From Phaeosaccion multiseriatum (taxonomy: Eukaryota; Protista; Ochrophyta, other classes): DNA of 64,000 nucleotides. The position numbers and the translations under genes are program-made. The stretch is taken from NCBI GenBank assembly GCA_965112735.1, contig OZ218953.1, forward strand, positions 1,426,001-1,490,000, in the 5' to 3' direction. Numbering within the stretch: position 1 is the stretch's first letter; the number at the start of each line of letters is the position of its first letter. Shown here in pieces: positions 48,746-53,718 of the stretch. The notes beneath the pieces are model-generated. The model ran no database searches and was not told the DNA's origin. It saw only the letters and a program-made list of their open reading frames with translations.

Positions 48746-49077
48746 CAGCTTTGCCCGATTTCAGTCATGCAGACTGTTGCGCTGCTGCTGCTGCTGCTGG
48801 TTCCGCTGCTGCTGCTGATGCTCCTGCTACTTTCCTGTTTCCCCTCCTTTAGAAGGGAAGACTGCGAGGAGCAAGGAGGAGAGAAGGAAGAGCAACGAAG
48901 GACGAGGAACAGCACCACCAGCGACACAGGAAACAGTTGAAAGGCAGAGGAGAAGAGAGGGGGGGGGGGGGGAGGAGAGAGGAGAGAGGAGAGAAGGGGG
49001 AACATCATTTGAAAGAATACGGATATTTTACTTTTAGCCCGACGGTTGGAGAGGTGGGACGTCACATATCACACCGC

Positions 49078-49596
49078 ATGACCTCCTTTGTGAGATCTCC
49101 GGGATGCTCTCCGAGGAGGAAACTGCAAACTGCTATGCAGAGGGACCGCTTCTTGAATGACAGTGATTCAGATGAGGAAGTAGAGAAGAGGAAAGGAGGA
49201 GGAGGAGGAGGAGCAGGAGGAGGAGCAGGAGGAGGAGCAGGAGGAGGAGCAGGAGAGAGCAGCAAGACAGTAGCAACAGGAGGAGGATCATCAGGAGAAG
49301 GATTGGGAGGGGTAGGGGAGATAGGAGATGGAACACCCAGAAGAAGAAGCGTAGCAGGGGAAGAAGAAGAAGTGGGAGAGGAGGGAACGGGGAAGCCCAA
49401 CGGGGTGCGAGAGCACAAGGGAGAAGGGTGCAGGAACAGCAACGAGAGCGTGCAAATATCTAACCCAGCGCCAGCGGAGTCCAAGAGCGAATCTATGGAG
49501 GAAAAGAGAAAGGGAGTTGAAGCATTCGTGACGGACCTGGTTTCCAATCAGATTGAGCTGATGACCGACGCACTGACCGATGCAGTGCGGAAATGA
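49078..49596 (+). CDS. Hypothetical low-complexity protein
   Basis: ATG-initiated ORF of 172 aa (MTSFVRSPGCSPRRKLQ..FLNDSDSDEE..VEAFVTDLVSNQIELMTDALTDAVRK), divergent from the GFA gene; no recognised domain. Confidence 0.5.
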   Translation: MTSFVRSPGCSPRRKLQTAMQRDRFLNDSDSDEEVEKRKGGGGGGAGGGAGGGAGGGAGESSKTVATGGGSSGEGLGGVGEIGDGTPRRRSVAGEEEEVGEEGTGKPNGVREHKGEGCRNSNESVQISNPAPAESKSESMEEKRKGVEAFVTDLVSNQIELMTDALTDAVRK

Positions 49597-49811: not shown

Positions 49812-50755
49812 TTACGCAAATTTCTGGACTATTCTTGTCTTGCTCAGAGGAGAGGGCCCCAGAGAGGCTTCGAAAGCCGTGTTTGAGAGAAAGCCCACCA
49901 GCTGCCCGAGTCGGCTGGAGAGAGCCGCGAGGCACTCTTTCGCACTCGTTCTCACTTCCAATCGACCGCAGTACGCTCGTCCACTACTTGGAAGGGCTGG
50001 TGACTGCATTGCCATCGCCGTGAGAACGACTGCAATTGGGGCTCCCTGCCAGGACTGGAACATCCACGCCGCAGTCACAAAGTAGTTCTCCTGCTGCTCC
50101 GCGGCTGACGCGAGCACTCGCGCCGCCTTGCGAGCATCTGCGGGGGCGTTGGGGTCCTCCCGCGCGTCAAGTATCGTGTACACCTCCTCGGCAGATTGGC
50201 AGTAAGGCTCCATCTCCCGCCGGCTGTGAATGGGCACGCTCTGCACAAAGGGGAGGCCCAACCCACCCCACTTGTCCTGGAAATCCGTCCACAGTAGCTT
50301 AGCATCCCCACCCGAGTAGGGGCGAAGCAGCTCCTCGGCAGGGATACTGTACGAACCGCAGCTCACGACGGCCCCTGCACTCGACGCCGTTGCACCTTGC
50401 TGCCCACCGGAGGCCACCGCTGCTGCTCCGCCTCGCAATTGGGATGAATGGTGGAACTCCTCTTCCGTTGTAGTGAACGGGAAGCGCAGAGAGGCGTACA
50501 CGTGGACATCAGTCAAGTGCTCATTCCCACTGGACGCCTCGTCCAGAGGAATGACTGTCTCCCAAGTGTGGCTCTGCCCCGGGTACAGGACATGAACCAC
50601 GTGCGTTTCGGCCCTCTTCCTCTTCCAGGCCCCCTTACTGGAGCACGATACCGCGAGCTCCACCACAAACCCATCTGGGAGCGTCTGCCCTGTCGCGTTA
50701 TAAGCACGCATCCGTATCGTCAGGCCCTCCAGCCGATGGGAGGAGCCTCTGCTGC

Positions 50756-50789
<34 letters not shown>

Positions 50790-53718
50790 GCCTCCCCCAC
50801 CTCTTGCTGCGAAAGAGTGGCCAGCTTCGAGAAGTACCGGGTCGCTGCCACCGTTCAGTGCCTGCATGGGATGGTCCATACCCTCGCACGGCTCGTTGGG
50901 GAAGAGGTGGTGTGTGTCACCCCCGTGCAAGAATCCACCACCAGCAGTAGCAGCAGCAGCAAGCGCAGCCTCACATCGCCCCCCCCACGCCGGTAGAGGT
51001 GCCAAGTCTGTGAGGTAGGCCCTCTTAAACTCCGCCGCTAGCCCCTCCTCGGCAGCCGCAAAGGCTGCAAGTAGCTTGATGGCTCTAGCCGTGCATGCCG
51101 TGCATGCCTGTTTGGCTCCCCCCCCTGCCAACTCACTCCTACTGCTCCTGACCAGCTGCCGATGGTCATGCCTCAGCACACGCGAAGCAGACGTCAAAAT
51201 CTCCTCCCCCCCCGCTCCTCCCAGGCACAAGCGTATGAGACTGTCCACAAGCATAAAGTGCGCCTGCTCGTTCAGCTCCTCCGACACTGACCCACCGCCG
51301 CTTCTTTGAGAGGCCGGCACGTTCTCCCACCCCTCTTCCCCCTCCTCCTCGTCCTCCTCATCCTCCTCCTCGGCCCCCTCCTCCCACCCCGCCTCTGCGA
51401 ATCTCTCATATCCAAAGTCCGAAGCCAAGGTGGCAAGAAGGTTCCTTGGTGCTTCGGCTGCGTCGAACTCGTCCATCATATCCAGTGAGACAGGGGAATC
51501 AGGGGTGGACGAAGAGTCGCCGTGCAGCTGCCCCAGGTATGTCGCGAGCACCTGTTGGCGGATGCGGGGGGGGGGGGGGAGGTGGACGGACAGAGGGAAT
51601 CAGAGCGCAGAGTGCGGCCGGGAGAGTGCCGACAGAAGGGGAGGTGTAGCAGTTGTGCAAAGAAACACAGCAAGTCAGTCCCCAACTCCTTCTCTAAGGC
51701 TGCACTGCATGATGAAAGGCTTCGTTGACTTGACTTACATGCTGCAGCTGTATCTTAAGGCCTGCGGACCGACCAACGTGGCCGAGCCACAGCCACATGG
51801 CGAGGTCATCCACCACTTCGCACAAGTCTCTTCGGTGCAACGCGAGAGTGGCCAGGGACGATGGTGCCGCCTCTGAGGGGCGGCTCTTCTCCACAGGGCA
51901 AGCGAGCTTGAGCACAGTCGCCAGCAAATCCACATAGGCCCGAGCGCTGTCGGAGGAGCCGTGACTGCTGCTGGTGAGGCTGCCTCCGTCCCCTGGTGTG
52001 GACCACATGAGGCACAGGCGGCATTGCTGGAGCAGTACCATACTCAGCTGCAGCCAGCAAGGCAGCTCAGCATCCTCACGAAATAGCAGGCCTCCCGTCG
52101 CCCCGGAGAGGAGTGCCACCGCACAAGTGCAGAGGGATGCAACAAACTCCTCGCGCACTCCTGCAAGCTTGTCGTTCTGGTGGTGCTGCTGTCGAAGGAG
52201 ATCAGTCAGCAGTGCAGTGCCCAAAACGGCTTCCAGCTGAGATGCCGATGCAGGTCGGGGACTCTCTCCTCCTCCTTTCGCGACAAGGACAATGTGTGAG
52301 ACTTGGCTCATGATGGCTGCTCGCTCTGCCGAATGGCGCTGCGGCGACAACGAGGCTACTTCGAGCAGCAAGGACGGCACCAGCTCCACAATGACCTCGG
52401 CATCTCTCATCCCTCGCAGACTCAGCACCACCCCCGTAAGTATGTGTTCCCTCCCCATTTGCTGCGTGAGGGAAGAAAAGGTCTTGTTGTCCTGTTGGTC
52501 CCCACTTTCAATGCCATTGGAGAGCAAGCGGCGCAGAATGACAGGGACGAGAGCGTGTCTCTCGGCTTGCAAGGCGGCGGAGCACTGCAACAGCTCCAGT
52601 GCCCCGAATGCGGACGCCACCGCCACTGCGGCGCTCAGACCTTCGGTGCGAGGCAATAGAGTGCAGAGAAGCCAGTCTTTGACCCGAGCTCGCACCGTAT
52701 TCTTCGGCCCAGTGTTTTCGTCCAAATCGTCCTGACCACCAAAAGAGGAGACGCCAAAGGCCTGCTGCTGCTCTGCAAAGACGTCTTCTCGGCCCACAAT
52801 GGGCACGCCGCTGGCGGCGGATGTACCGAGACGAAGGGCGGCCGAGAAGAGGTGCACACAAGTGCGCGTAGCAGGGGCTGAGTAGCGGTCTCCGAGGCTA
52901 TCGTGTCTATGGACGAACCTAGAAAGCCTTGGAAATGCCCGCCGTCGAACATGCTCACTCAGGCTCTCCAGCTCAGATGCCACTGCTCGATGTGAAGCCG
53001 CGCTCACACCACCATGGAGAAGGGTGTCCATCTGTTCTTCGAGACTCCCTCTCCACACGAGGGGGTGCAGGCCTAGAAAGCGATTGACGAACCCAAAGGC
53101 AGCAGAGGATACCTTGTCTGACTCGTCCTCGCACGCGCGCAGAGCGGCTCCCAAGAAGTCATCCACCACCCAGTCCTTAACGCGGTTGACGGCCCGTTGA
53201 GCGTCAGCTCCTGACTCGAAGCTGCCGTTCACGAACCCCTCGTGACCCAAGGCAGCACTCCAGCAGCGACCGACTGCATCCGAAACCTTCGTCAGCACAA
53301 AGGCCCGGCCTGCACTGCTGCCGCTCCTATCGTTGAGACTTGAATCGTCGGTGACGCAGGCGACGAGACCGCGCTGAACGCCCTCGTCTTGAAACACACC
53401 AAGTTGAGCCACCACTGGAAGGCCCAAGGCCAAGTTCACAGCTGCATACTCTTTCCTATCGAACGAGGAGCCCACAGCCGAACTTGGAGAGAGGGTATCC
53501 AAGGCACGAAGAAGCCAAGTCTCGGGACGGAGAAGCTTGCACTCCTGCTCGGACAGGTCGCTGCGGGCACGCGCGAGGGCAGCAAGCGCCTCAAGCGCAT
53601 TCGTTGCAGCCTCGCCCTCATCCACATCCGAAGCGAGGACTTCCACAAGAGAGGAAAGGCTGGCCGCTTCCATTCGTTGATGCAACCTTTTGGGTTGATG
53701 AGGGGAATTAGGTGCCAT
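49812..53718 (-). CDS. Beta-adaptin-family large subunit, best resembling TPLATE (TSET complex)
   Basis: Two exons (53718 or 53673 to 51739; 51551-49812), about 1240 aa. Helical trunk, then appendage motifs LNGGSDPVLLEAGH, LTIRMRAYNAT, VVSCGSYSIPAEELLRP, FQDKWGGL, FQSWQG and RLEVRTS. Confidence 0.62.

Follow-up and report, generated by a model that had tools for sequence, protein, structure and literature searches.

A divergent gene of the ochrophyte Phaeosaccion multiseriatum as a probable TPLATE subunit of TSET

A two-exon gene for a trunk-and-appendage protein

The stretch of DNA analysed here, referred to as the window, comprises 64,000 nucleotides of the genome of the ochrophyte Phaeosaccion multiseriatum (contig OZ218953.1 of assembly GCA_965112735.1, positions 1,426,001 to 1,490,000 of the forward strand; positions within the window are counted from its first letter). 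Between 49812 and 53718 it contains a minus-strand gene that, as sequence and profile comparisons indicate, most likely encodes the orthologue of TPLATE in a TSET core that this alga has retained. TSET counts as a third ancient family of heterotetrameric coats, next to the adaptor protein (AP) complexes and the COPI F-subcomplex.

The listing of open frames contains two minus-strand frames in this region, at 51694..53718 (674 amino acids (aa), with an ATG start) and 49812..51551 (579 aa). These can be joined in phase 0 across an intron of 187 nucleotides (nt), giving a product of about 1,239 aa (660 + 579), in agreement with the size of about 1240 aa put forward by the first-pass annotation, which a model had made from the DNA letters and a list of open reading frames. 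Both edges of the intron fall between codons, and if it were read through, the two frames would not be in phase. The homologues, as represented by the consensus of alignment A3 (see below), read through the junction region uninterrupted. The putative splice sites are thus placed on the basis of the DNA sequence and of the continuity of the homologues. A run of about 15 C on the minus strand (51562-51580) lies just upstream of the intron acceptor. All searches and folds reported below were run per exon or part of an exon.

Three alignments were used for profile comparison and structure prediction. A1 consists of 17 rows and covers the C-terminal 365 residues of the algal protein family to which the window protein belongs, A2 contains 20 plant TPLATEs, all from seed plants and 75-96% identical, and A3 contains exon 1 and seven of its relatives. 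The features of the gene are listed below, with structural features taken from the AlphaFold2 (AF2) models and their predicted local distance difference test (pLDDT) scores.

51739..53718, minus strand: exon 1, 660 aa, ATG-initiated; N-terminal and middle parts of the alpha-solenoid trunk
53059..53445, minus strand: N-terminal trunk block, which pairs with TPLATE residues ~89-196 (DESDKVSSAAFGFVNRF versus DRSDAVSKVAFESVGRLF) in hhalign comparisons of A3 subsets with A2
51751..52485, minus strand: middle trunk block, which pairs with TPLATE residues 346-633 (VREEFVASLCTCA versus FREELVASLVESC, and CRLCLMW versus CRPCVKW) in the hhalign comparison of A3 with A2
51552..51738, minus strand: intron, 187 nt, phase 0, with a GTAAGT donor from 51738 and a CAG acceptor to 51552, as read from the sequence
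49812..51551, minus strand: exon 2, 579 aa and a TAA stop codon (coding 51551-49815); end of the trunk, acidic linker and appendage
51327..51386, minus strand: acidic Glu/Asp run in the linker ahead of the appendage, from the translation
50340..50837, minus strand: beta-sandwich subdomain of the appendage, which contains LNGGSDP and LTIRMRAYNAT; AF2 strands at residues 25-189
50751-50792, minus strand: poly-Ser loop in the beta-sandwich, with low pLDDT in the AF2 model
49866..50339, minus strand: platform subdomain of the appendage, with YSIPAEELLRP, FQDKW, FQSWQG and RLEVRTS; AF2 pLDDT 76-96

The first-pass annotation described a helical trunk followed by an appendage, and this is what the AlphaFold models contain, exon 1 being all-helical and the C-terminus having a sandwich-platform fold. 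The five motifs that it had singled out are all encoded by exon 2, in the order LNGGSDPVLLEAGH, LTIRMRAYNAT, VVSCGSYSIPAEELLRP, FQSWQG and RLEVRTS. The exon 1 model, which was built from A3, is a solenoid of moderate confidence (pLDDT 61.5), and its neighbours in a Foldseek search were generic ARM/HEAT solenoids, AP-3 beta among them. The appendage model, which was built from A1, has a beta-sandwich followed by an alpha/beta platform (pLDDT 74.7, predicted template modelling score (pTM) 0.69). In a Foldseek search of the PDB with this model, the top match was a chain of the COPI leaf (E 7.9e-11), and the next matches were gamma-COP appendages, FAAP100, and the beta2 and alpha ears of AP-2. The matches to COPI, gamma-COP and the AP-2 ears ranged from E 8e-11 to 4e-5. 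An Atlas structure search with the appendage returned beta-COP clusters at template modelling (TM) scores of 0.54-0.56 and a root-mean-square deviation of about 3.5 A.

Orthologues of the window protein from brown algae and xanthophytes (P0003, P0013, P0016, P0017, P0021 and others) are extended at the C-terminus in columns 560-655 of A1, and a conserved P-L-x-R-x-L motif, together with a basic tail, terminates this extension. In the window protein the tail is short (PLSKTRIVQKF) and ends about 30 residues past the platform. This could be a lineage difference or the result of a missed 3' exon; inspection of the DNA downstream of 49812 revealed no convincing third exon. An open frame on the plus strand (48937-49596) runs towards the 3' end of the gene, and the DNA at that place is a long GAG/GAA-type repeat, which reads CTC CTC on the minus strand.

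An unnamed ochrophyte family and its relation to plant TPLATE

The first-pass annotation expected that automated annotation would miss this gene, and standard searches indeed fail to name it. Exons 1 and 2 had no Pfam matches at E<=1, and six relatives had none at E<=0.1. Neither the single exons nor the appendage profile had a relevant match in sequence searches of the PDB, and a word-indexed protein search with exon 2 found no match in its length range. In a feature search of the ESM-Atlas, the trunk exon matched no more than generic HEAT families, and exon 2 had no hit above 0.79. When exon 2 was searched exhaustively with phmmer against 1.84 billion representatives, only 12 proteins reached E<=1e-3. 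These were all unnamed ochrophyte proteins, and those labelled with an organism came from Phaeothamnion, Choristocarpus and Chrysoparadoxa. The Ectocarpus proteins CAB1120325.1 and CBJ33764.1 were reached through a relative of 1,407 aa that shares 82% identity with a Heterococcus protein; CBJ33764.1 is annotated in the database as 'expressed unknown protein'. In BLASTP comparisons, exon 1 matched the xanthophyte-like protein P0003 (E 9e-22), while exon 2 matched both P0003 (E 2e-20) and the Ectocarpus protein P0017 (E 2e-21). The orthologues in Ectocarpus, xanthophytes, Phaeothamnion, Choristocarpus and Chrysoparadoxa align over both exons. As both window exons align to these proteins, they form a real family that is conserved in ochrophytes and unnamed in the databases. 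The divergence of the sequence is such that this protein can be named only by comparing profiles with profiles and by comparing structures.

The six-frame translated genome (67 Mb, 22 contigs) was searched for beta-COP and other adaptins. Matches to Coatamer_beta_C (85 bits) and Coatomer_b_Cpla (69 bits) were found on contig 9 only, adjoining matches to Adaptin_N. The gene on contig 9 (C9:~166.6-177 kb) is a canonical beta-COP with many short exons, in which Adaptin_N, Coatamer_beta_C and Coatomer_b_Cpla all score above the Pfam thresholds; these three markers are absent from both window exons at E<=1. The separate canonical beta-COP on contig 9 rules out that the window gene is the beta-COP orthologue. 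Ten Adaptin_N loci in total cover AP1-4 and COPI, none of them within the window. The ear of the genome's own beta-COP contains the landmarks DPVYAE, INRT, DYITP and WAEFEW, in the same order as those of the window protein. The first-pass annotation had held that beta-COP shares only the first motif, which is incorrect, as the beta-COP of this genome carries the whole landmark series. Because beta-COP has the same series, the case for TPLATE needs statistics.

As a reference, TPLATE sequences were collected by scanning metagenome contigs with the back-translated plant motif GSSDPCY[IV]EAYH, which yielded 19 plant loci. One of these (L023) has an uninterrupted frame of 1,153 aa, and its relatives carry the name 'protein TPLATE'; twenty of these relatives make up A2. 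Comparison of A3 with the plant TPLATE profile A2 in hhalign matched the middle trunk to TPLATE residues 346-633 at E 4.1e-8, with a probability of 95% over 279 columns. The N-terminal trunk was matched by row subsets of A3 at E 7.9e-5, 1.5e-3 and 2.4e-3, with a constant register. The appendage (A1) matched A2 at E 7.2e-5 and a single TPLATE at E 4.1e-5. In an extended alignment (mact 0.1), each of the motifs noted in the first-pass annotation pairs with its plant counterpart in order, and FQDKW additionally pairs with FRIWP. The platform is colinear with the TPLATE platform at this setting. A TPLATE segment on its own matches the platform in register at E 0.0025. The plant motifs given in the first-pass annotation agree with Arabidopsis TPLATE (PMC12167817 supplement) save for one residue, as Arabidopsis reads KTWHG, and KTWYG is the seed-plant majority. 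When the window row was removed from the alignments, the trunk kept three colinear matches (E 0.0024, 0.039 and 0.065), and the appendage matched at E 1.8e-4.

No control comparison reached a comparable score. Reversed TPLATE profiles matched at E 0.65 and 0.029. The appendage exons of the genome's own beta-COP scored E 0.61, 0.069, 0.22, 0.69 and 0.6, versus E 0.03, 0.016 and 0.0025, in the correct register, for pieces of the TPLATE appendage of a size like that of the beta-COP exons. Similarly, the trunk exons of beta-COP scored E 0.23-0.8, versus E 0.029, 1.7e-4, 1.8e-3 and 0.099 for pieces of the TPLATE trunk, which were colinear. Open frames of the other adaptin loci and of delta-COP gave E-values of at least 0.15. 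In this comparison, in which the TPLATE profile covered seed plants only and beta-COP was run exon by exon, homology of the window protein to bona fide TPLATE appears to exceed homology to beta-COP along its length.

Partner subunits and competing identities

The first-pass annotation had suggested a search of the genome for the other TSET subunits as a check. This recovered TSPOON and TSAUCER, by motif search followed by comparison of blocks by eye, and did not find TCUP or TTRAY1/2. The query for TSPOON was an LLSRYF-type N-terminal pattern that is common to the published Ectocarpus and Phytophthora TSPOONs, and it had one match in the genome and none in the control. The match lies in a single-exon frame of 278 aa (C7:3231413-3232249, plus strand), in which three conserved blocks agree with Ectocarpus TSPOON when compared by eye, without a scored alignment. 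An insert of about 190 aa, rich in Gln, Ala and Glu, lies between the first two conserved blocks of the longin domain. The TSPOON protein scores 16 bits against Clat_adaptor_s, which is below the threshold, and the search of the six-frame genome with PF01217 (E<=10) missed it. TSAUCER was searched with the pattern SLALEAMFLL, common to the Vaucheria and brown-algal TSAUCERs, which matched with one mismatch at C15:833.8 kb. The surrounding locus (C15:~829300-838050, minus strand) contains roughly ten exons with successive blocks of Ectocarpus TSAUCER, again compared by eye, including ALALEAMFLL, VWLLGEYC, ILMRLKVLAMYE and LDVYSFLQAL. No SH3-like tail was seen at this locus. By eye, the blocks of both TSPOON and TSAUCER agree with the published Ectocarpus, Cladosiphon and Vaucheria sequences.

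Searches with generic families recovered four sigma genes, zeta-COP, four likely mu genes, delta-COP and two COPI propeller genes, and yielded no additional TSPOON, TCUP or TTRAY candidate. Two loci were considered as TSET subunits and rejected: the weak Adaptin_N match at C5:600 kb, a possible TSAUCER, is an AP beta, and the fifth mu-homology locus (C3), a possible TCUP, is delta-COP.

Several results count against the identification of the window gene as TPLATE. The closest predicted structures in the Atlas search were beta-COP clusters, with no TPLATE cluster among them. A hidden Markov model (HMM) of A1 gave plant TPLATE just 5-7 bits, which is not significant, and in the opposite direction the plant TPLATE protein and HMM had no match in the six-frame genome at E<=10. 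The latter result also means that there is no competing, less divergent TPLATE in this genome. The window exons alone matched the TPLATE profile at E 0.016-0.027, which is at the level of the null, and the E-value of the trunk varied with the alignment rows, from 4e-8 to 2e-3. As A2 contains seed plants only, the TPLATE profile is shallow, and as beta-COP was run exon by exon, this control was handicapped. Among the partner subunits, TCUP was not found, as the five mu-homology loci resemble mu1-4 and delta-COP, although TCUP may lack a mu-homology domain. TTRAY1/2 were not found either, the COPI alpha/beta' propeller family giving two loci only with a query that is not specific to TTRAY.

The proximity of TPLATE and beta-COP makes a beta-COP origin the first alternative to be weighed. 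The window gene would then have arisen by duplication of beta-COP within this lineage, or be a coat-like derivative of a beta-COP/TPLATE ancestor, and would act outside TSET; its resemblance to TPLATE would reflect common descent. The best structural neighbours of the appendage are beta-COP appendages, the order of the landmarks is the same in beta-COP, and plant TPLATE itself weakly matches the beta-COP Pfam family (E 3e-4), which means that the two families are close. We nevertheless consider this origin improbable, as for every segment of the appendage the fit is better to TPLATE than to the beta-COP of this genome, and as the trunk matches TPLATE at E 4e-8, whereas it has no match to the beta-COP exons. 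Neither the window exons (E<=1) nor the six relatives (E<=0.1) have a Pfam match, and the TSPOON and TSAUCER kept in this genome require a beta-type partner. A more distant origin, in which an unrelated solenoid acquired a sandwich-platform ear or converged on one, would make the hhalign matches artefacts of solenoid structure or of composition. False profile matches arise easily with solenoids, the window protein contains many low-complexity runs, the feature searches did not go beyond generic HEAT families with the trunk exon or above 0.79 with exon 2, and FAAP100 and BBSome chains, which also bear ears, were among the Foldseek matches. These chains, however, belong to longer proteins and match over the ear-sized model only. 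Moreover, three regions of the window protein match TPLATE in a colinear arrangement, with a register that is constant across row subsets, whereas reversed profiles and open frames of other adaptin loci gave E-values of at least 0.03. We therefore regard such artefacts as a very unlikely explanation.

The lowest probability, slightly below that of an unrelated solenoid, is given to the beta subunit of AP-5 or another divergent adaptin. AP-5 subunits are likewise highly divergent, often lack Pfam matches, and combine a solenoid with an ear-like C-terminus. The profile matches, however, fall on trunk blocks that are specific to TPLATE, and on the SDP...EA / N.T / Y.IP..ELL.P series that is common to TPLATE and beta-COP. 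In addition, AP-5 chains are absent from the best 50 Foldseek matches listed, and AP1-4 and COPI are already covered by the ten Adaptin_N loci. An identity as TPLATE, the most likely one, is favoured by the matches to the TPLATE profile, by the separate beta-COP and by the TSPOON and TSAUCER genes. Together, these support the proposal of the first-pass annotation that a fast-evolving TSET is retained in this lineage. The window protein appears to be a divergent member of a known family, TPLATE, that went unrecognised in the literature examined (Hirst 2014, Penot-Raquin 2025).

A probable TSET core in ochrophytes and comparison with known coat complexes

TSET was lost in animals and fungi and, to our knowledge, studies of it have been confined to plants and Dictyostelium. 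By analogy with the Arabidopsis TPLATE complex (TPC) and with Dictyostelium TSET, the alpha-solenoid trunk of the window protein would pair with the trunk of TSAUCER, and the two trunks would jointly embrace the longin domains of TSPOON and a medium subunit. As for the sandwich-platform appendage at the C-terminus, it may serve as a hub at the plasma membrane to which the outer scaffold and the accessory proteins attach during endocytosis. That the subunits assemble, where in the cell the complex resides and a role in endocytosis are all inferred from the same analogy.

For Ectocarpus, TSAUCER, TCUP and TSPOON have been listed, with no TPLATE or TTRAY (Hirst 2014, PMC4031984). The algal family described here would fill this TPLATE gap. 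A more recent survey reported TPLATE in 81% of stramenopile libraries (Penot-Raquin 2025, PMC12167817). In the 'validated by phylogeny' TPLATE file of that survey, which holds stramenopile and haptophyte sequences, the beta-COP platform hallmark FEWENK occurs 282 times, and DPVYAEA occurs 258 times. The file contains neither REELVA, a block of the TPLATE trunk, nor the NGGSDP and GRLEVR of the algal family. The Ectocarpus entries in the file (CBJ27676.1, ID6576) read as beta-COP, and the Ectocarpus entry shares stretches with the canonical beta-COP of the Phaeosaccion genome; CBJ33764, an Ectocarpus member of the algal family, is found nowhere in the supplement. Sequences labelled as references in the tree file are AP beta and TPLATE only, and none carries a beta-COP label. 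Judging by its motifs, the 'TPLATE' set of PMC12167817 appears to be largely beta-COP. The diatom 'TPLATE' that was used for co-expression analysis in that study is Phatr3_J54511.

On balance, we lean towards a twofold conclusion, namely that the algal family is the missing TPLATE of brown algae and xanthophytes and of the ochrophytes related to them, as part of at least a TPLATE-TSAUCER-TSPOON core, and that the stramenopile and haptophyte 'TPLATE' of 2025 is beta-COP. If both are true, the real distribution of TPLATE, and hence of TSET, in these groups remains to be established, and the conclusions on diatom co-expression and on Tara Oceans that were drawn from the 2025 marker need re-checking. 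The beta-type subunit was missing from the founding survey for brown algae, and in 2025 this place was apparently filled in with beta-COP, in which case the public data set (PMC12167817) probably contains an error. The distribution of TSET matters beyond these algae, as it shapes the reconstruction of the endomembrane system of the last eukaryotic common ancestor. With a TPLATE candidate, TSAUCER and TSPOON in one genome, the ochrophyte TSET core becomes directly testable. If the candidate is TPLATE, it also illustrates how far this subunit can drift while its appendage landmarks are kept.

The ears of AP-2 beta2 and alpha have the same bilobal fold as the appendage of the window protein (Foldseek E 3e-7 to 4e-5), although no relation between them was seen at the level of sequence profiles, and the large subunits of clathrin adaptors in this genome are covered by ten other loci. 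Beta-COP (COPB1), the large subunit of the COPI F-subcomplex, is closer, as it shares the architecture and the order of the ear landmarks, and has the closest appendage structure (TM ~0.55). Unlike the window protein, beta-COP is recognised by Pfam, and the window trunk has no profile similarity to the beta-COP exons.

TPLATE, as known from Arabidopsis (At3g01780) and Dictyostelium (Hirst 2014, PMC4031984; Yperman 2021, PMC7909872), consists in plants of a trunk, a canonical appendage and a plant-specific anchor of 115 aa (Yperman 2021, PMC7909872). The window protein lacks this lysine-rich 'anchor' tail. As the anchor is specific to plants (Yperman 2021), its absence is no argument against membership of the TPLATE family. 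Unlike TPLATE, the window protein has long low-complexity insertions (poly-Ser, Gly/Ala and an acidic run), and the two are only ~13-26% identical in the aligned blocks, a link that BLAST, HMMER and Pfam do not see. In Arabidopsis, the complex no longer assembles when the stretches of highest conservation in the sandwich and platform are mutated (Yperman 2021, PMC7909872). The window protein is similar to TPLATE in length (1,239 versus 1,153-1,176 aa), and both proteins have an alpha-solenoid trunk with a canonical sandwich-platform appendage after it. The N-terminal trunk, middle trunk and appendage of the two proteins are colinear, and their five appendage landmarks pair one-to-one.

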